A DNA stretch of 7,560 bases from Paramicrosporidium saccamoebae KSL3. Taxonomy: Eukaryota > Fungi > Cryptomycota. Positions 1 to 7,560 of the stretch are shown here, in pieces. The position numbers and the translations under genes were made by a program. Under the pieces are notes generated by a model. It was given only the letters and a program-made list of their open reading frames with translations. It did no database searches and had not been told where the DNA came from. Position 1 is the stretch's first letter; each line of letters starts with the position of its first letter. The DNA is taken from contig MTSL01000073.1 in assembly GCA_002794465.1 (NCBI GenBank), positions 1 through 7,560 of the forward strand, written 5' to 3'.

Positions 1-13
1 CCCCCCCCCCCCC
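1..13. repeat. C13 homopolymer at window start (probable contig break)
   Basis: 13 consecutive C. A matching C12 run ends the window (7549-7560). Confidence 0.9.
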
Positions 14-82
14 GACTCTCAACTCGGCCTCCCACTACGTAACAATTATAGCGATTTATTTGTAAAATATGCTGTTAATAGA

Positions 83-823
83 TCACTCTTCGTTAATCCA
101 TTCTTCAGATCGTTCATGCTCAGGAATATCCTCAATTCGTGCTTCTTTTGTAAGGGTGCTTTTACGTTGTCGTCGAGTCCGTGGATTAGTATTTTGATGG
201 TGATTTTCGCCCCTTCTATCTACCTTGCATGCTGACCAGTGTGGCATGTTTGGCGCAATTTCTGGCTCTGTCTGGACCCGTCTTTTACGGCGACGTCTAA
301 AGGTCATCCTTTTTGTTCTGACAGGCTGCTGGAGGGTGGTATGGTTATGGGGCTGGACCGTCCCTGCTCCATTGACATTGCCGGGTGTAGGAGCTTTTTG
401 AGTCGAGGCCGCAATAGAGGACAGCTTTGTTGGATCCACACTGATGGCATTCTGCGTGGAGAGCGGTACTACTTGAATAATCCCCACCGGTACATAGACA
501 GTGTTTGGCTTGCTTGCATTCGGCGCGACAGTGGGTTGGACCGGCTTCGGTTTTAACTTTAGCTCTCTCGCATGTTCTGCCTGCCATGGGGTGACTCTGG
601 TCCTTCTCACACTCCCATCAAGCAGAGGTCGAGTCATAATCCAGGATCCATCTGGCTGCACTGTTTCCACATAAAAGCCCTTTTGATAAAGTTTATCCAC
701 ATAATACGGATTGGAGAGGCGACGCTGATCATTGATAATGTAGATGGCCCAAATGACGAGGAGCACAATGATGGCAGATACGGGAGCAGCTATATACCTT
801 CGGATCCGAGCTACATCCATCAT
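83..823 (-). CDS. Hypothetical protein (246 aa) with N-terminal transmembrane/signal anchor and basic NLS-like cluster
   Basis: Uninterrupted ATG-started ORF. Hydrophobic segment IAAPVSAIIVLLVIWAIYII (about 734-793), Pro/Thr/Gln-rich linker, KRMTFRRRRKRR (278-313) and a second patch RTRRQRK. No family recognised. Confidence 0.75.
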   Translation of the reverse strand: MMDVARIRRYIAAPVSAIIVLLVIWAIYIINDQRRLSNPYYVDKLYQKGFYVETVQPDGSWIMTRPLLDGSVRRTRVTPWQAEHARELKLKPKPVQPTVAPNASKPNTVYVPVGIIQVVPLSTQNAISVDPTKLSSIAASTQKAPTPGNVNGAGTVQPHNHTTLQQPVRTKRMTFRRRRKRRVQTEPEIAPNMPHWSACKVDRRGENHHQNTNPRTRRQRKSTLTKEARIEDIPEHERSEEWINEE

Positions 824-972
824 GACGAGGGTGCGCTGTGGCAGCTCTTTACGACTGTTGGGCTATCCAATGTTAACGAATCAACTTGAGAGGACGCGTT
901 GGTGACAAATCAGAAATTGGCAATTTCAAGTTGGTCCAATGGGTCGATTGGTCAGTGGGTAGGCAGAAGAGA
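824..972. promoter_or_regulatory. Short bidirectional promoter between divergent ORF1 and the SUMO protease
   Basis: 149 bp between divergent ATGs. CCAAT in both orientations (867+, 916-, 936+, 947-), ACGCGT at 894-899, palindrome GAAATTG-G-CAATTTC at 913-927. Confidence 0.5.
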
Positions 973-1707
973 ATGACTACCACAGTTATAGACTTGACAT
1001 TGGAGGAAACTGACGATGAACAATACAATACGGATACTGACGAAACGATAACCGTTGTGAATGGATTCCCATTCACCACTCGTCACCGCTCCATTCTACA
1101 AGACAGCCAAGAATGGCTTACGGACGAGATTATCAATGCCTTTTGTTTCCGCGTTGTGACGGCAAAGCCCAAAGTGCACTGCTGCTCCACATTTTTCTAC
1201 ACAAAAATAGCCGCCTCCATGGACGAAGCATGGCTGAACCGCTGGAAAAGGACAGTGACCGGCAAGGACTTGATAGTTGTGCCAGTCAATTGGGGGAATT
1301 CGCATTGGGCGCTTGTCGTGTATGACGTCAAGGCAAATGCTCTAAGATATTATGACTCGATGATGAATACAGCAAACAGTCGACAAGCACTTGGACTGAT
1401 CAAAGAGGCATTTGAGATGTGCCAATTATTTCCAGAGCCTTCCCCTCCCTCAACACGACAATCTTCTGACACTGTCGGTGTTCTCGCGTTTATAATGTCA
1501 AAAGTCACTATCAATGAACCCAACAAATCTCCTCCACCGCTGAAGCTAGAGACACCGCCGGGCCAGTATCAACAGACGGACGGCAGCTCCTGTGGTGTTT
1601 TTGTCTGTTGGTGGATCGCCAAACTGACAGGTTTTATCGTCTCGGCTCCGCCCAATCCGACTGTATTCCGCAAGCGCATTTTAGATTCCATAATAAATCC
1701 GCCTTAA
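973..1707 (+). CDS. Ulp1/SENP-family SUMO-specific cysteine protease (peptidase C48), 244 aa
   Basis: Motifs WLTDEIIN, STFFYTKI, VPVN..SHWALVV (His 1303-1305), YYDS (Asp 1354-1356) and QQTDGSSCG (Gln 1573, Cys 1591-1593), so the triad is intact. The TFFY and RW features fit the SUMO-type rather than the NEDD8-type (SENP8) branch. First in-frame ATG is 973; the track's 886 start is TTG. Confidence 0.9.
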   Translation: MTTTVIDLTLEETDDEQYNTDTDETITVVNGFPFTTRHRSILQDSQEWLTDEIINAFCFRVVTAKPKVHCCSTFFYTKIAASMDEAWLNRWKRTVTGKDLIVVPVNWGNSHWALVVYDVKANALRYYDSMMNTANSRQALGLIKEAFEMCQLFPEPSPPSTRQSSDTVGVLAFIMSKVTINEPNKSPPPLKLETPPGQYQQTDGSSCGVFVCWWIAKLTGFIVSAPPNPTVFRKRILDSIINPP

Positions 1708-2154
1708 TTATAGTATTTTTATTCCGATACTCCTTGCCTGCGCCATGACCATCCGAAAGAGCAGTTTGAGGGGAGTGCCTGTTAGCTTTGGATCTTCGCT
1801 CTTTACCTTGGCCACTTCGTAAATGTATCGTCTGTCTAAATTTGCAACGGTCCCCTTACTGCTTGCCTTTTCCACTCCTGCAGCCCGTTTCAACAGCCAG
1901 GCTGTCGAGGGAGGTCGGACGAGGAAGGAAAAGGTACGGTCGGTCTGGACAGTGATTTCGCAGCGGAGAGGCGTGCCTGGCTGGTAGGACTTGCTGGTGT
2001 CGTTAAACTGACGACAAAAGTCCATGGCCTTGACACCTTTTTGACCAAGGGCTGGACCGACAGGTGGCGAGGGCGTAGCTCCACCAGCTGGAATTGTGAG
2101 CTTTAGTAGTGAAGGCCGGTTCGACACTGGAGCGGTGCCCTTTTTACTCGACAT
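1708..2154 (-). CDS. MRPL11: Mitochondrial large-subunit ribosomal protein uL11m (yeast Mrpl19 / human MRPL11 orthologue)
   Basis: AGGATPSPPVGPALGQKGVKAMDFCRQFN, DRTFSF, PPSTAWLLK and ARSIGIK are uL11 signatures. The GVKAMDFC variant matches the mitochondrial/fungal type. No intron. Confidence 0.95.
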   Translation of the reverse strand: MSSKKGTAPVSNRPSLLKLTIPAGGATPSPPVGPALGQKGVKAMDFCRQFNDTSKSYQPGTPLRCEITVQTDRTFSFLVRPPSTAWLLKRAAGVEKASSKGTVANLDRRYIYEVAKVKSEDPKLTGTPLKLLFRMVMAQARSIGIKIL

Positions 2155-2183
2155 TGCCGATCACGAAAGCCCTGGCGAGCTGG

Positions 2184-2208
2184 TGGAGTGGAGTGGAGTA
2201 GAGCGGAG
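2184..2208. repeat. Pentanucleotide microsatellite (TGGAG)x5, degenerate, just upstream of uL11m
   Basis: TGGAG TGGAG TGGAG TAGAG CGGAG. It reads as a pyrimidine-rich tract on the uL11m coding strand, 30-54 nt before the ATG. Confidence 0.75.
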
Positions 2209-2225
2209 AATTGAGTGATAAGTAG

Positions 2226-2312
2226 TTTATTGAGAATTTGGTGGCAAGTATTTTATTGGGAATCTGGTGGTATGCATTTTATCGAGAATTGGGTGGTATG
2301 CATTTTATTGAG
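2226..2312. repeat. 26-bp tandem repeat, about 3.3 copies, in the divergent uL11m / secreted-array intergenic region
   Basis: TGAGAATTTGGTGGCAAGTATTTTAT (2231-2256), TGGGAATCTGGTGGTATGCATTTTAT (2257-2282), CGAGAATTGGGTGGTATGCATTTTAT (2283-2308), with partial copies on either side. Confidence 0.9.
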
Positions 2313-2510
2313 GTTGATCCGGCCTCTTTGGTAATATATATAGAGGAATTTTATCGGAAATGGCCCAGCTACTCTGATGTTTTCAGAGGCACTTTACTGA
2401 GAATAATCCGACCTCTTATAGCCAGAATCATTCAATGCCGTCTTTATAATATTAAACATTGGCAATAAAGCTTACGCTGGTCTTGTAATGGGGATGGCTT
2501 ATCTTTTGTC

Positions 2511-2518
2511 TATATAAG
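2511..2518 (+). promoter_or_regulatory. TATA box candidate for the first secreted paralog
   Basis: TATATAAG ending 44 nt before the ATG at 2562. Confidence 0.5.
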
Positions 2519-2561
2519 GAAGTCGACGAACAACAAAATAGAGGGCCTCTGAACTTTATGA

Positions 2562-3494
2562 ATGCGCGCTTTGTTGATAGTCAAAATATTTGTGGGGGTC
2601 GTTTTGGGAAGTGTGGAATTTACTAGGATTGTTCAATATGACAAGTTGGTGTCCATCACACAGACAACTCCCGACCGTCTGTTCTTGGTCAATCCCAATA
2701 CTCTCGAATGGACCGGTGCCATTTACAACAATGACCGTCTCGCGATCACCGCCTCCCATGCCAACACTTGTCTATTCACAATAAGCCAGTCTCATAGTAG
2801 TGCTCCTTACCATCTCAACCCGGTGAGAATGACAAAAGACCCTTGGGAAGTGGTGTCAGAGGCGCTGATAAGACTCTCTGAGGGGAAGGTCTCGGTGCTA
2901 GTATTGATGCCAACCAAGAAGAGGACCATTTCTTGCAGAGAATGGATGAAAAAAGTTCATTTGAATCGGGTGATGAGTCCTTCTGATCTTTTGAAATGGG
3001 GCAGCAAGCCGAGGAGCACAGAGTATGCAGCTGTCCAATTCACAGTGATGCTTAAGCCCGATTTCAACACTTTAGAGAACAGTCGGTCCGCATCTGAAGA
3101 TTTGGGACAGTCGTCGAGACACAGTGACATAGACCGTCAGTCTTCAGTCAGTCACTATAAACCCCCCGCACCGATCGCTCCTCGGAAACCCAGAAAGACT
3201 CGAGATTCCCCCGCATTCCCAGGGCCTTTACGGGTATCAGCTGCCCGCCGCTCCTCTGAACGCCAAAAGACAGTACGCACATCGTCGCGCAAACCTATAC
3301 CAAATGAGTCTCTGACGAGGGGAAACGCTCGAGAGAGTTTCAGGACTTGGTCAGCAAAAAGCGTCCAGCAGTCTACATCGGGCCGTAACTCGTGGGGAGA
3401 TTCTCGTAACTCGGCGGTACAGCTTCGCAATCCCCATCCTAGCCTCAAGCTAGCACAATTTCCCGATGGTGAAGACGAAAATGGCAACTTTTAA
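2562..3494 (+). CDS. Secreted orphan family protein, paralog A (310 aa), basic Ser/Arg-rich tail
   Basis: Signal-peptide-like MRALLIVKIFVGVVLG. Shared domain QY...NTC...LVLMPTK..C.EWM..V.L at 2634-3047, then a low-complexity S/R/P tail. Confidence 0.85.
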   Translation: MRALLIVKIFVGVVLGSVEFTRIVQYDKLVSITQTTPDRLFLVNPNTLEWTGAIYNNDRLAITASHANTCLFTISQSHSSAPYHLNPVRMTKDPWEVVSEALIRLSEGKVSVLVLMPTKKRTISCREWMKKVHLNRVMSPSDLLKWGSKPRSTEYAAVQFTVMLKPDFNTLENSRSASEDLGQSSRHSDIDRQSSVSHYKPPAPIAPRKPRKTRDSPAFPGPLRVSAARRSSERQKTVRTSSRKPIPNESLTRGNARESFRTWSAKSVQQSTSGRNSWGDSRNSAVQLRNPHPSLKLAQFPDGEDENGNF

Positions 3495-3735
3495 TGGCTC
3501 TTGTAAAGGTCAGCCTTGGAATAATATCTACTGTTGATGAGCGAATTAAATTTACTAACGTATGTGGCTTCGTTATAGGTAGCTATTCTTAATAGAGCCA
3601 AACCGGATTTTGGGATCGCCATCGCGAGGACCATCAAGATCTCTTCCCGTCCTAGCAGGGGTATGGGCCGGGGTGCATGATTCTCCGGATCAGACTCTTT
3701 AACAGTGCCAACCCCAGTCGACAGTGACGTGACGT

Positions 3736-4839
3736 ATGCTACCGCTCGTTGTCTTGGCCCAAGTCTTCCTTCCTCTTGTCCTCTCGAGCTTTATCATAGC
3801 TGACGCAACTCAATATGGGGACTTTATAGATATGAATGTGGTTCCGGAAGCGCAAAGCCTCTACATGTTCAATTCAGCATATGAAACTGTTAGCGTCGTT
3901 TACGAAAAAGGCAAGGTGGAATTTCGTTCTACCTGCAGCAACACTTGCGTATTTCAGCTACTTCAGCCACAAAATGACTCTCGGTTCAAGCTAAAGCCGG
4001 TAGATTTTCCTTACAACTGTTTCGAGGGAAATCACTACTCCACGTGCTCTGTGGCGAATGCAGGCATGTCATTTCTGATCTTGGTGCCGACAAAAGACTC
4101 GGTGGTGCCTTGCACTCAGTGGATGGACGAGGTGGAGTTGCATATGGAAATGGAATATTCGGCCTTTGACGAATGGACCAAAATGAGCCATAACGGCTCT
4201 TATGAAGTGGTGGGACTTGCGGTCCGACACCGAGACAACACGTTGCTTCCGGGAGTAAACCATGGCTTCTGTGAGCTCCCGTCTATGCCCTTTCTCCTAA
4301 GAGAGCCGACGATCATTACCGAACTGAAAATTAGGACAACCTCCCTGCGCCTCAAAAAGTTTGATATCACCAATCCTTTATCCGAAACCGATCCTCTGCG
4401 CAGCAGATATAGACATTTTCGATCTCAACAGCGTTTGCCCGATGAAGTCCTTTATCGGGACTCGCCATCTTTTGAAGCTGGAACCGACTCTTCTGAAGCT
4501 GGAAGCGACTCTTCTGACTCTGGAAGCAACTCTTCTGAATCTGGAAGTAGCTATTCTGACTCTGGAAGCAACTCTTCTGAATCTGGAAGTAGCTATTCTG
4601 AATCCGGAAGCAATTCTTCTGAGTATAAATCTTATGAATCTGGACACCAATCATACTCCAGATCTAACTCTGAAAACTTGGATCCCTTTATAAGTCGATT
4701 TAAAAAATTGTTCTTGGGGGAACGCGTTTCAATGTTCCACGTTCATAGTAGTTCGGATTCAACTGATGAGCCATCTCAAGAAGTGGTTAGACCCCGCTAT
4801 AGTTATTCTGCTCCTCTTCCAAGCACCAAGCCGTTATGA
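3736..4839 (+). CDS. Secreted orphan family protein, paralog B (367 aa), acidic Ser/Gly repeat tail
   Basis: Signal-peptide-like MLPLVVLAQVFLPLVLS. Shared domain QY...NTC...LILVPTK..C.QWM..V.L at 3811-4224, and a heptapeptide repeat tail. Confidence 0.85.
   Translation: MLPLVVLAQVFLPLVLSSFIIADATQYGDFIDMNVVPEAQSLYMFNSAYETVSVVYEKGKVEFRSTCSNTCVFQLLQPQNDSRFKLKPVDFPYNCFEGNHYSTCSVANAGMSFLILVPTKDSVVPCTQWMDEVELHMEMEYSAFDEWTKMSHNGSYEVVGLAVRHRDNTLLPGVNHGFCELPSMPFLLREPTIITELKIRTTSLRLKKFDITNPLSETDPLRSRYRHFRSQQRLPDEVLYRDSPSFEAGTDSSEAGSDSSDSGSNSSESGSSYSDSGSNSSESGSSYSESGSNSSEYKSYESGHQSYSRSNSENLDPFISRFKKLFLGERVSMFHVHSSSDSTDEPSQEVVRPRYSYSAPLPSTKPL
4474..4620 (+). repeat. Coding 21-bp minisatellite x7 ([ED][AS]G[ST][DNS][SY]S) with an exact 42-bp higher-order duplication
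   Basis: EAGTDSS EAGSDSS DSGSNSS ESGSSYS DSGSNSS ESGSSYS ESGSNSS. Positions 4516-4557 are identical to 4558-4599. Confidence 0.95.
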
Positions 4840-4847
4840 TCAATAAC

Positions 4848-4907
4848 AAAGAGCAATTCGCTGGCATTATGGTTCGTAAAAAGTAATTCGCCAACATTAT
4901 GATCTTT
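4848..4907. repeat. Degenerate 30-bp direct repeat x2 in the 3' flank of paralog B
   Basis: AAAGAGCAATTCGCTGGCATTATGGTTCGT versus AAAAAGTAATTCGCCAACATTATGATCTTT (21/30 by manual count). Confidence 0.55.
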
Positions 4908-4913
4908 AATAAA
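4908..4913 (+). terminator. Polyadenylation signal candidate (AATAAA) for paralog B
   Basis: AATAAA 69 nt after the stop codon and 68 nt before the next ATG. Confidence 0.4.
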
Positions 4914-4981
4914 GCCTTTTCGGTACACTCACTGTTGACAACGTTGCACATTACCACAGCACCACAGCCACAATCGTCAAT

Positions 4982-5893
4982 ATGTGGAGAGTGGCAACAC
5001 TTGCTGGGTTACTTTTATCGAGCGTCTTTGGGGATGTAACGTTTACCGATCTGGCACAATACGATAGATTGTTGACGCTGTCGAGTCCTACAACTAGTGA
5101 ACTGTACCTCTTCCACAGCACTCCTTACTACTGGACTGGTATTGTACACAATCAAGGCCAACTGGAAATAAGTGCTTCTCACCAAAAAACCTGTCTCCTC
5201 CGTCTCAACCGTTTTATGGACGGCTGTTCTTACAAATTTGACTTGGTTGACTTTCAGCGCAACTCGCGACAACCCACTGCTGAGGCTGTAGTCAAGCTTA
5301 GGGGAGAGCGGACGACGTTCCTAGTACTGATGCCCACCAAGGATCAAGTTCCGTCATGCGAGGAGTGGATGGGCAGTGTAAATCTGCATCGAGGCATGAG
5401 TGTCTCAAGGTATGATCAATGGTGTCACACTCCGCGAGCAGCTGATTTTGCCGTCGTGCAATTCACAGTTTCAAACACACTTGCAGAGTCTAATGACGCC
5501 TCAACCTACGGAAGCGAGGCTTCAGTACAAAGCATTTCCCCTAGAAAAACTACGGTTATAAGGCGAACTCTTACACCCAGTCCCAGAAAGTCTACCACTC
5601 GTTCGATAAAGCCCAGTCCACGACTCCCCCTTAGCGAACTGATTACTTCAGACATCAGTGGTTCTCGTACTGCCAGTCCCAGAGGGGGCAGTCAGTCTGG
5701 GATTTATGTCTCGCCAAGATTTACAAGGCCGCCCCGAGCAGCATCAGGCGGAAGTGCATCGAGCGATCCTTGGGATGTGATGATCTCTCAATGGTCAAAT
5801 AGTGCAGATAGCTTGACTAGACAACTTGACACACTGGCGCTTGAGAGCAATGAACCTAACCTGCCCACCAAATTGACTAAAAAGCGAGCTTAA
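4982..5893 (+). CDS. Secreted orphan family protein, paralog C (303 aa), basic SPR(K)-motif tail
   Basis: Signal-peptide-like MWRVATLAGLLLSSVFG. Shared domain at 5057-5470 (51/138 identical to paralog A by manual count). The tail has five S-P-R motifs. Confidence 0.85.
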   Translation: MWRVATLAGLLLSSVFGDVTFTDLAQYDRLLTLSSPTTSELYLFHSTPYYWTGIVHNQGQLEISASHQKTCLLRLNRFMDGCSYKFDLVDFQRNSRQPTAEAVVKLRGERTTFLVLMPTKDQVPSCEEWMGSVNLHRGMSVSRYDQWCHTPRAADFAVVQFTVSNTLAESNDASTYGSEASVQSISPRKTTVIRRTLTPSPRKSTTRSIKPSPRLPLSELITSDISGSRTASPRGGSQSGIYVSPRFTRPPRAASGGSASSDPWDVMISQWSNSADSLTRQLDTLALESNEPNLPTKLTKKRA

Positions 5894-6054
5894 TAATATT
5901 GAGAATGGCTGCTTATAAGTGTACCGCACATTTTACTAAAGTAACTGTTGAAGTTTGAGTGAAAAACTGTCTTATTGTTGACATTGCACCTTAGTTATTA
6001 ATGGTCATTTTCGATAGTAAGTTACTACTAGCAACCTCACAACAATAAAAAAGT

Positions 6055-6117
6055 TGCATTCCCAAACTAATCACGGTGGCAAAGTCTGTAGCAGTCCGAG
6101 TGCACAATTATCCTTAG
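6055..6117 (+). pseudogene. Short relic (copy 0) of the right-end gene family
   Basis: CIPKLITVAKSVAVRVHNYP* aligns without gaps to CTSLLILSDRTRTVQIHNYP (6444-6503), 8/20 identical. DNA 6092-6114 versus 6481-6503 is 17/23. Flanked by in-frame stops. Confidence 0.5.
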
Positions 6118-6365
6118 CACGCTCCAATAATATTCGTTAGAACACAATATTTTCATTCTTGGCCAACTCTAATTGTTCGGAACTATAACTCGCAGCCAAA
6201 GTCGTCAGTGCTGCTGTAGCCTTTCTTGCCGCCAACGTATCATTGCATTTGGAAGTGTCGTGATCTGTCTCTTGATTGAATACTTTGGCACAGTGGTGAC
6301 TCTTGAGGGCGCCTGGTGGTCCTCGTAGTTTGATTAGGGCCGGTAGGTATTTTCGTTGCTATGCT

Positions 6366-6831
6366 ATGGCTCCGCAAACTGGGAAGCGTGGCGAGCAGCA
6401 TGTGGCGTTTTTGGTCTTCCTTCCAAGCCTTGGTTGGATGCCGTGTACCAGCTTATTAATTCTATCAGATCGCACTCGGACAGTACAAATACACAACTAC
6501 CCTACAAGTCGCTTGCATAAGACACCGTTGGAATATCCATGGCTGGACAAGGATGACTTTGCCATAGAGTGTAGTCAAGGGATCATACTCTGTGACAAAG
6601 TCATCCTTGTCCAGCCATGGATATTCCAATTGTGCAAGATGCTTAGTCGTTTGCGTCGTCCAAATGCAGACGATAGTCGTAAAGTATACAATACTTTTGA
6701 GATTGATCTTTTTTGTCCAAGGGAATAAGCGAGTTGATCCAGTTCGTTATATGTGGAAATCCAAGGTTCGAAGTGCTGACGTTAAAGTGGATTGCGCAAC
6801 TGCCCCTACCTATCCTGCAAGCAGCATTTGA
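6366..6831 (+). pseudogene. Frameshifted paralog (copy 1) of the 6800-7453 coding region, disrupted by an inverted duplication
   Basis: EYPWLDKDDFAIECSQGIILCD matches GHPWLSKEAFVAECVQGITFRD. ILLRLIFFVQGNKRVDPVRYMWKSKVRSADVKVDC matches ILLKLIFSAQEDKLVDLIRYMWQSEVLNAEVRIDC, but in a different frame. The offset to copy 2 shifts 314 to 309 to 310. TGG>TAG and a 1-nt deletion occur near 6674-6678. Confidence 0.8.
6528..6629. repeat. Long inverted repeat / hairpin (about 45-bp stem, 12-nt loop)
   Basis: 6528-6561 is the exact reverse complement of 6596-6629 (34 bp). Pairing continues inward to 6572/6585 with one mismatch and two G:T pairs. An outer 9-bp extension 6512-6520 / 6630-6638 lies beyond a 7-nt bulge. 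Confidence 0.95.
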
Positions 6832-7453
6832 TAAGAGGCCACCGGGACATCCATGGCTAAGCAAAGAGGCCTTTGTTGCAGAGTGTGTCCAAGGGATCAC
6901 ATTCCGTGACGAGAGCAAGTTCCGTGAGAGAGCAGCGCTGTTAATCCTCACAGAGCCGTTCGTGTCATCCGAGTGCAGGCGATGGTTCGTAGAATATGTG
7001 ATACTGTTGAAATTGATCTTTTCTGCCCAAGAGGATAAACTGGTGGACCTGATCCGCTACATGTGGCAATCAGAGGTACTAAATGCCGAGGTCAGGATCG
7101 ATTGCACCATCAGTGTATTTGACCGCCTAAAACTCAAGAAGAGGAGAGTGATGACCCTCTGTCTTGCCCTGGAGGCCGAGAAGCCCGGGGAACCTTGGAT
7201 CAAGCGGGAAATTCCCAGATACAAGGCCTTTTGCGGCAACGTCCAAGGCCTTGAGATCACGGCCCTTGCCGAGCTCCACATGAGTCTCTGGTACACCGAT
7301 GGAGATACGTGGAAGTGCCGCCTGTGTGGATACCGCTCGCCGGACACATGGCCCATCTGGAGGAAAGCCCCCGCGGACTTTGCAAGCGATTCCTCCGCAG
7401 TATCTACCATTGTGAAATTTGTTACGAACATGCTCTGGACAGGATTCCCCTAA
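6713..7453 (+). CDS. Hypothetical protein (copy 2 of the duplicated family), start unresolved, possibly 5'-truncated or pseudogenised
   Basis: The frame is open for 246 codons but begins at TTG, and its first 85 nt or so are out-of-frame copy-1 sequence. The first in-frame ATG is at 7060. Homology to copy 1 over about 6840-7105 supports coding ancestry. Contains WKCRLCG. Confidence 0.5.
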   Translation: MSKGISELIQFVICGNPRFEVLTLKWIAQLPLPILQAAFDKRPPGHPWLSKEAFVAECVQGITFRDESKFRERAALLILTEPFVSSECRRWFVEYVILLKLIFSAQEDKLVDLIRYMWQSEVLNAEVRIDCTISVFDRLKLKKRRVMTLCLALEAEKPGEPWIKREIPRYKAFCGNVQGLEITALAELHMSLWYTDGDTWKCRLCGYRSPDTWPIWRKAPADFASDSSAVSTIVKFVTNMLWTGFP

Positions 7454-7560
7454 AGGACTTGCCATCGATTGAAGTAACACCTTTCCCTCCACCTCCAATC
7501 TCAGTCCCACCACCTCCAATCTCAACCTTACCTCCATCCTTATCTCCACCCCCCCCCCCC
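7255..7560 (+). CDS. Open frame running off the window: Cys/His cluster plus polyproline repeat (partial)
   Basis: Stop-free from 7255 to the end: ...LAGHMAHLEESPRGLCKRFLRSIYHCEICYEHALDRIPLKDLPSIEVTPFPPPPISVPPPPISTLPPSLSPPPPP. ATG at 7348. Not in the ORF track. Confidence 0.45.
7489..7560 (+). repeat. 21-bp degenerate repeat x3 (PPPISVP / PPPISTL / PPSLSPP) merging into a terminal C12 run
   Basis: CCACCTCCAATCTCA occurs at 7489 and 7510. Third degenerate unit at 7531. C run at 7549-7560. Confidence 0.8.

Follow-up and report, generated by a model that had tools for sequence, protein, structure and literature searches.

The window, by which we mean the whole stretch of 7,560 nt that was analysed, carries near its 3' end two copies of one gene family in tandem, the first of which contains a long inverted repeat; all coordinates given below are those of the window and of its plus strand, unless stated otherwise. 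Copy 1 (6469-6797), delimited by tblastn with family proteins and by frame analysis, is the exon-2 remnant of a dead paralogue, called here gene A. Copy 2 (6788-7453) is exon 2 of the annotated gene PSACC_00957, called here gene B, and it comes without the N-terminal exon of the family. Gene A has no start codon, and its homologous frame is broken by TAG codons at 6644-6646 and 6674-6676, by a 1-nt deletion after position 6674 and by the frameshift that the hairpin introduces; the host had initially been annotated as a pseudogene, and the lesions agree with this. The intron acceptor of gene A is conserved (...TCTATCAG/ATCGCA, at 6468/6469, the slash marking the boundary), and a remnant of exon 1 may be recognised further upstream at 6260-6322, where a frame without a start codon, followed by a stop, corresponds to the N-terminal transmembrane region (VICLLIEYFGTVVTLEGAWWS). 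This last assignment is based on weak but consistent tblastn matches to five paralogues, at residues 40-60. On its other side, exon 2 of gene A is retained up to the D-C codons of the family (~6795), and there it meets exon 2 of gene B at a GATTGC microhomology (6790-6795): on the gene A side these letters are the D-C codons of the DCT motif, and on the gene B side exon 2 of family genes starts AG/ATTGC. Read from these boundaries, the host of the hairpin is the 5' part of a decayed family member, fused to exon 2 of its tandem neighbour.

Gene B is damaged as well. Its C-terminal CxxC motif (HCEICYEH, the second CxxC of the family) is encoded in another frame from ~7340-7375, and an HSP of P0002 (7339-7461) lies in a frame different from that of the gene B ORF. 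A run of five C near 7361-7365 precedes the change of frame at HCEICYEH and points to a frameshift or to a homopolymer sequencing error. Beyond it, a proline-rich 21-nt repeat (7484-7525), located just before the poly-C run that ends the window, continues the low-complexity C-terminal tail of the family in another frame. The annotated coding sequence of PSACC_00957 begins with the ATG at 6639, directly 3' of the stem of the hairpin. However, its exon 1 (6639-6683) consists of pseudogene sequence from copy 1, in a frame other than the homologous one, and together with the 104-nt intron that follows it has the look of an ab initio prediction, in an annotation made by MAKER with keep_preds=1. PSACC_00957 is thus probably a chimeric, dead gene model. 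Reading the right arm of the hairpin as an intron, with GT at 6600 and AG at 6669, was rejected because the donor is poor and gene A carries other lesions.

The window reproduces exactly bases 1-7560 of the 43.5-kb contig MTSL01000073.1 in assembly GCA_002794465.1 of Paramicrosporidium saccamoebae KSL3. P. saccamoebae is a Rozellomycota parasite of amoeba nuclei. The KSL3 spores were filtered, and their DNA, which did not undergo whole-genome amplification, was read by Illumina sequencing (2x101, trimmed to 80 nt), assembled with Velvet (k = 53) and annotated by MAKER with keep_preds=1, in a study that also included poly-A RNA-seq (PMC5701793). The contig normally has a read depth of 50-59x. 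The organism is probably diploid, and 76% of its genome is genic. Both ends of the window (1-13 and 7547-7560) are poly-C runs, followed by a scaffold gap of 156 Ns (7561-7716), and the assembly evidently broke at homopolymers. The 303-aa ORF of the window had no carrier among Logan or ENA contigs. Several other features of the window deserve mention. A gene for an Ulp1/SENP-type C48 cysteine peptidase (973-1707; Pfam PF02902, E = 8e-16) abuts base-to-base an intact 148-aa ORF of the opposite strand (1708-2154, minus strand), an arrangement that illustrates the compactness of this genome. The 148-aa ORF matches the two domains of ribosomal protein L11 (E = 3e-23 and 5e-16) and is absent from the annotation; the record instead has a 109-aa plus-strand gene at 1823-2218, which is probably an annotation error for a mitochondrial L11 gene. 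A 26-nt unit (GAATTGGGTGGTATGCATTTTATTGA-like) is repeated four times in tandem at 2208-2336, in an AT-rich, G-skewed spacer upstream of the first of three tandem paralogous ORFs (2562-3494, 3736-4839 and 4982-5893). These three ORFs, spanning 2562-5893, have signal-peptide-like N-termini and a common LVLMPTK...C..WM core, and none has a Pfam match; the first two are fused in the record into a single 638-aa gene, and the middle one contains a Ser-rich tandem repeat with a 21-nt (7-codon) unit at 4449-4643.

Copies 1 and 2 belong to a family that is newly recognised here and that is specific to the Paramicrosporidium lineage. A word-indexed protein search with copy 2 returned copy 2 itself as its sole match, and an exhaustive HMMER search with the copy-2 ORF found 44 representatives with 28-39% identity. 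At least 12 family members are annotated hypothetical proteins of P. saccamoebae (including PSACC_00099, 00203, 00204, 00329, 00957, 00971, 01203, 01209, 01730, 01768 and 02139), and the remainder come from JGI metagenomes. The family has no Pfam match, and scans of metagenomes with the family alignments confirmed no loci. Full-length members contain N-terminal transmembrane helices, an all-helical conserved domain and a C-terminal CxxC...CxxC motif, and their genes have one short intron with a conserved acceptor (...TAG/ATTGC). An AlphaFold model of the domain (pLDDT 45.6) was too poor for a fold search. We surveyed ~134 kb of the genome in nine loci (named L followed by a number below), every one of them selected for its family members, with 16 or more family copies in total. 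The members mostly lie in tandem pairs or triplets (L002-L009), and many of the partners are decayed. Nucleotide identity between tandem copies ranges from 93% (L008 7435-7886 vs 9855-10306) down to ~71%, and truncated or frameshifted copies are found at L004 177-1149, L008 9839-10516 and L009 8577-9216. Taken together, the range of identities and the broken copies indicate a rapid birth-and-death turnover of the family.

The inverted repeat in copy 1 has arms of 48 nt (6523-6570 and 6587-6634) that are 92% complementary and separated by 16 nt. Its core is perfect: the left arm core (6528-6561) is the exact reverse complement of the right arm (6596-6629) over 34 of 34 bp, the length that the initial annotation had given for the stem. 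The left arm core is ancestral family coding sequence: it encodes LEYPWLDKDDF, in the region of the conserved WL..F..EC motif of the family (also given as PWL..DF..EC), and the tblastn matches to family proteins span 6516-6596, left arm included. The right arm repeats it exactly in inverted orientation and is the derived one of the two. Between the perfect arms, a 34-nt spacer (6562-6595) is collinear with copy 2 and holds an inner quasi-palindrome (6563-6570 / 6587-6594). At the point where collinearity ends, 6561-6570 and 6587-6596 form 8 Watson-Crick pairs and one G-T pair out of 10, and both halves align with copy 2, in agreement with the earlier proposal that this inner stem existed before the long one. 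The outer limits proposed for the hairpin (6512 and 6638) did not hold up: a possible extension of the stem pairs 8 of the 9 positions of 6512-6520 with 6630-6638 over a 7-nt bulge, and this weak extension is not significant, being equalled by 19% of flank shuffles. The fold itself, which it had been suggested to compute over 6500-6650, is very strong. As RNA this segment reaches -93.9 kcal/mol (z = -15.2), a value attained by none of 200 shuffles, and as DNA it reaches -50.9 kcal/mol (z = -13.3). Perfect hairpins of at least 15 bp with a loop of at most 120 nt occur only twice in the ~134 kb of the same genome, the hairpin of the window included, which places it far beyond chance.

Comparison of the two copies shows how the hairpin was built. 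Copy 1 (6517-6795) and copy 2 (6831-7105) are 71% identical, and the alignments that flank the change, 6517-6596 with 6831-6910 and then 6645-6795 with 6954-7105, are 71-76% identical; the left arm core matches copy 2 at 24 of 34 positions. Between these blocks, 48 nt of copy 1 (6597-6644) face 43 nt of copy 2 (6911-6953), a net gain of 5 nt that shifts the frame. The 24 matches found in this segment equal the shuffled mean (24.0 +/- 2.2), and collinearity with copy 2 is back at 6645 (22/29 matches, then 84/121). Thus, the right arm is the derived one, and it replaced ~43 nt rather than being inserted. Copy 2 has no pre-existing long quasi-palindrome, and the right arm is 75% complementary to its positions 6844-6887. 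On all these points the comparison sustains what had been read from the letters at first, namely that the left arm is family coding sequence homologous to copy 2, that the right arm took the place of the homologous sequence, that collinearity returns at about 6645-6655, that the copies are about 70% identical and that the right arm matches copy 2 in antisense at 30 of 42 positions.

The timing of the event can also be estimated. Copies 1 and 2 show a dN/dS of 0.28 with a dS of ~1 (Fisher p = 1e-4), which indicates that they were separate functional paralogues for most of their history. An internal 314-nt tandem duplication of a single gene was accordingly rejected in favour of two fused paralogues, since the copies diverged under purifying selection. 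The two arms, for their part, show no difference over 34 positions (upper 95% bound on divergence, 8.4%). As proposed initially, the inversion is therefore much younger than the paralogy: it is recent and arose in already dead sequence.

We propose that a single template switch over a short range, during DNA synthesis, left the hairpin as a neutral scar in a gene fragment that had died before, and we give this reading a probability of roughly 0.78. The reconstruction, inferred from the product, would run as follows. The nascent strand would have been copied up to ...ACTCTGTGAC (6587-6596), and its 3' end would have annealed to the nearby complementary AGAGT...G (6561-6570), either on the nascent strand itself or on the opposite template strand; the 8 Watson-Crick pairs and the G-T pair noted above indicate that a nascent 3' end could re-anneal there, and the inner quasi-palindrome is likely to have been the annealing site. 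The polymerase would then have run back along the left arm, used as template, before it rejoined the original template near 6630-6645, and the product would be a ~110-nt stem-loop with a strong fold in RNA and in single-stranded DNA alike. Fifteen nucleotides (6630-6644) fit neither the inverted copy nor the homology with copy 2, and they would require one extra small event, or a 7-nt deletion in an originally longer arm. The hairpin would have persisted because the locus is free of coding constraint, and we detected no evidence of selection on it.

The proposal is well supported because (i), the inverted fragment exceeds 15 nt and is an exact reverse complement of nearby sequence, (ii), it replaces ancestral bases, with a cluster of at least 5 differences that one switch explains better than point changes do, the pre-event state being taken from a 29%-diverged paralogue that serves as a proxy for the parent rather than from an orthologue or another isolate, (iii), copy 1 is collinear with copy 2 up to 6596 and again from 6645, as two switches would leave it, (iv), a short complementarity existed at the switch point beforehand and, (v), the inversion is young and its host is a pseudogene. 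The initial annotation had also invoked a switch driven by a quasi-palindrome, and the replacement, the restored collinearity, the complementarity at the switch point and a second case in the same family, described below, all speak for it. Template switching is known to have produced thousands of hairpins in primates, some of which became miRNAs (Monttinen et al. 2023, PMC10710096), and to have expanded inverted repeats in yeast (PMC13100816). The hairpin of the window is thus most likely a known kind of event, a textbook mutational scar, in a locus whose history is more specific than was first described: it is a chimeric dead locus in a lineage-specific family.

A second young hairpin emerged from the perfect-hairpin scan at L005 9335-9371 / 9405-9441 (MTSL01000035.1, ~20733-20839). 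It has 37-nt arms with 1 mismatch, a 33-nt loop and a folding energy of -88 kcal/mol, and its host is a family pseudogene, badly decayed and missing from the annotation, with PSACC_00329 directly downstream. Here again, the left arm and the loop are ordinary family coding sequence, and 31 nt of inverted copy stand in place of 48 nt seen in the neighbour PSACC_00329, after which collinearity resumes; the switch point shows 6 nt of pre-existing complementarity (CAGACG/CGTCTG). This hairpin occupies a different position in the domain, so the two events are independent, and the second case strengthens the template-switch origin of the first. An annotated minus-strand gene of 143 aa (L005 9385-9879) overlaps the L005 hairpin and is probably spurious.

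A third, older hairpin lies across the 3' intron-exon boundary of PSACC_01209 (L007 6449-6474 / 6493-6518), a gene whose intron has the signals GTTTGT ... CACTAAC ... CAG. Its core of 26 bp consists of 21 Watson-Crick and 5 G-U pairs, and the extended structure (6422-6545, MTSL01000092.1 reverse strand, ~12090-12213) has ~53 pairs, -63 kcal/mol and z = -6.6. The mismatches of this hairpin are G-U on the sense strand in 5 of 5 cases in the core and in 10 of 15 overall (p ~0.01-0.03 given the transition bias, transitions outnumbering transversions 27 to 6 in this genome). This pattern could reflect selection at the RNA level or, equally, a strand-biased C-to-T mutation. Two further inverted repeats (L008 10693-10759 and L003 15352-15421) were rejected as additional cases, both lying outside family sequence. 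Two young hairpins and one older one have thus been found, all in members of one family, and this recurrence is somewhat above a purely random expectation. Its simplest explanation is that pseudogenes are among the few unconstrained sequences of a genome that is mostly genic, and that our sample was centred on the family.

The initial annotation had further suggested that the locus may be a nascent self-silencing one, that is, a hpRNA or miRNA-like locus: the transcribed pseudogene would form a 48-57 bp duplex, and its dicing would repress family members or, in cis, the host transcript. Several observations speak for this idea. The hairpin is predicted to fold strongly, three members of the same family carry a hairpin, and the older L007 hairpin maintains its pairing on the sense strand through G-U pairs. 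The arms derive from gene sequence, as those of hpRNAs do, and the stable stem-loop expected of a miRNA is present, although a near-perfect 48-bp stem is not miRNA-like in detail. In addition, Argonaute and Dicer are present in Rozella allomycis, the sister lineage (PMC7313128), and new miRNAs are documented to have arisen from template-switch hairpins (PMC10710096). For P. saccamoebae itself, neither the genome paper and its supplements (PMC5701793) nor the literature that we found mentions Dicer or Argonaute.

The targets, however, argue otherwise. No 21-mer from the arms fits copy 2 with fewer than 5 mismatches, the longest exact match being 10 nt, and the arm 21-mers of the L005 hairpin have at least 6 mismatches to their neighbour. 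The suggestion that copies elsewhere might match better failed as well: in blastn against the nine loci (~134 kb), the other family copies, at least 16, match over at most 11 nt, which is the level of chance. Among 5.8 billion proteins, none has three or more 5-residue words in common with the copy-1 peptide. A target with long, nearly perfect complementarity to the arms was thus found neither in copy 2, nor in the ~134 kb of DNA, nor among these proteins. The only Rfam matches are sub-threshold (37.6 bits at best vs a gathering score of 79, so that no curated family can be assigned); they are to generic miRNA-precursor models and occur on both strands, as would be the case for any long hairpin. 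Moreover, the mismatch of the L005 hairpin is A-C on the sense strand, and the two young hairpins differ both in domain position and in distance to the downstream gene. As far as the letters can tell, a proto-miRNA or hpRNA reading of the locus is unsupported and is disfavoured on target complementarity, and a hairpin-RNA role of the locus, on the family or in cis, appears quite unlikely. A broader version, in which template switching would repeatedly turn dead family members into hairpin-RNA loci used by the RNAi machinery, for the cis-silencing of pseudogene or chimeric transcripts or for the dosage control of the family, seems to us very improbable. If it were true, pseudogene-derived endo-siRNAs and miRNAs born by template switching would have a counterpart in an early-diverging fungus.

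The hairpin may also be suspected to be an artefact of library preparation or assembly, namely a fold-back chimera in the Velvet contig. The assembly rests on short reads alone, taken from a metagenomic sample, a single contig set between poly-C runs and an N gap makes up the window, and, if the organism is diploid, a bubble could have been resolved arbitrarily. However, no MDA or other whole-genome amplification was used, and k (53) exceeds the 34-nt arm, with all canonical 53-mers across 6450-6700 being unique; reads must therefore have contained each junction. A chimera would also run on as reverse complement, whereas here collinearity with the paralogue is back after ~48 nt. The L005 hairpin has a mismatch in its arms, and both young hairpins lie in decayed genes, as expected of real events. 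None of the marks of such artefacts was found (a repeat at least as long as the k-mer, MDA, inverted sequence up to the end of the fragment), the hairpin is probably not an artefact, and we judge this explanation to be very unlikely.

Still less probable is a role in cis, whereby the hairpin would block scanning or translation upstream of the ATG at 6639, or act as a DNA cruciform or fragile site that affects the neighbour gene. Its position immediately 5' of the annotated PSACC_00957 coding sequence and its stability (-94 kcal/mol as RNA, -51 kcal/mol as DNA) would suit such a role, and an inverted repeat expanded by template switching changes the expression of GRE2 in yeast (PMC13100816). 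But the annotated first exon and its intron are the same doubtful, ab initio-like elements discussed above, the exon being out-of-frame pseudogene sequence, and PSACC_00957 lacks its N-terminal exon and carries a C-terminal frameshift, so there is probably nothing functional to regulate. Finally, terminal inverted repeats of a MITE or transposon were rejected, the arm having no other copy in the 134 kb and being homologous to the coding sequence of a paralogue.

A template-switch scar in dead sequence is thus our preferred reading, and the locus provides a clean one-step example of this process, with two independent cases, in a compact, early-diverging fungal genome. It shows that template-switch mutation operates in the Paramicrosporidium lineage and that its products survive in the pseudogenes of a tandem family with fast turnover. 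The analysis also flags PSACC_00957 as a chimeric and probably dead gene model, and it reveals an uncharacterised family with at least 12 annotated Paramicrosporidium members and metagenomic relatives. The locus would bear on the birth of small-RNA genes only if its hairpins prove to be transcribed and diced.

How does this hairpin compare with known systems? Inverted duplication of target genes is said to have given rise to plant MIRNA genes and to Drosophila hpRNAs, as Allen et al. in 2004 and Okamura et al. in 2008 reportedly described, and endo-siRNAs derived from pseudogenes were reportedly described by Tam et al. and by Watanabe et al. in 2008. With these loci the window shares arms that come from gene-family coding sequence and a pseudogene located beside a paralogue. 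Unlike the window, they have arms of hundreds of nucleotides or extended complementarity to a target, and small RNAs that were sequenced; here the arms are 34-48 nt long, and even the best potential target reaches only 71-75% identity and differs from every 21-mer at 5 or more positions. The likeness is closer to template-switch hairpins as described by the quasi-palindrome model of Ripley, by the four-point model of Loytynoja and Goldman and in primates (PMC10710096), in which an inverted fragment of at least 15 nt from adjacent sequence replaces bases in a single event. The perfect pairing of the whole stem, the collinearity on both sides, and the nucleation at a short complementarity are shared with these hairpins, and the size (34 nt, with the template ~34 nt away) is typical of them. 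The primate cases differ in that the ancestor is taken here from a paralogue and there from a phylogeny of orthologues, in that the host is here a coding-derived pseudogene of a compact Rozellomycota genome and there a primate intron, and in that some of the primate hairpins became miRNAs (PMC10710096). The promoter inverted repeats of Saccharomyces offer a parallel within the fungi, since there too a short imperfect repeat became a longer perfect one, in a frequent and recurrent process. But the Saccharomyces repeats were selected, in promoters and in transcription-factor sites, and an effect on expression is known for one of them (PMC13100816), whereas the event in the window took place in dead coding sequence.
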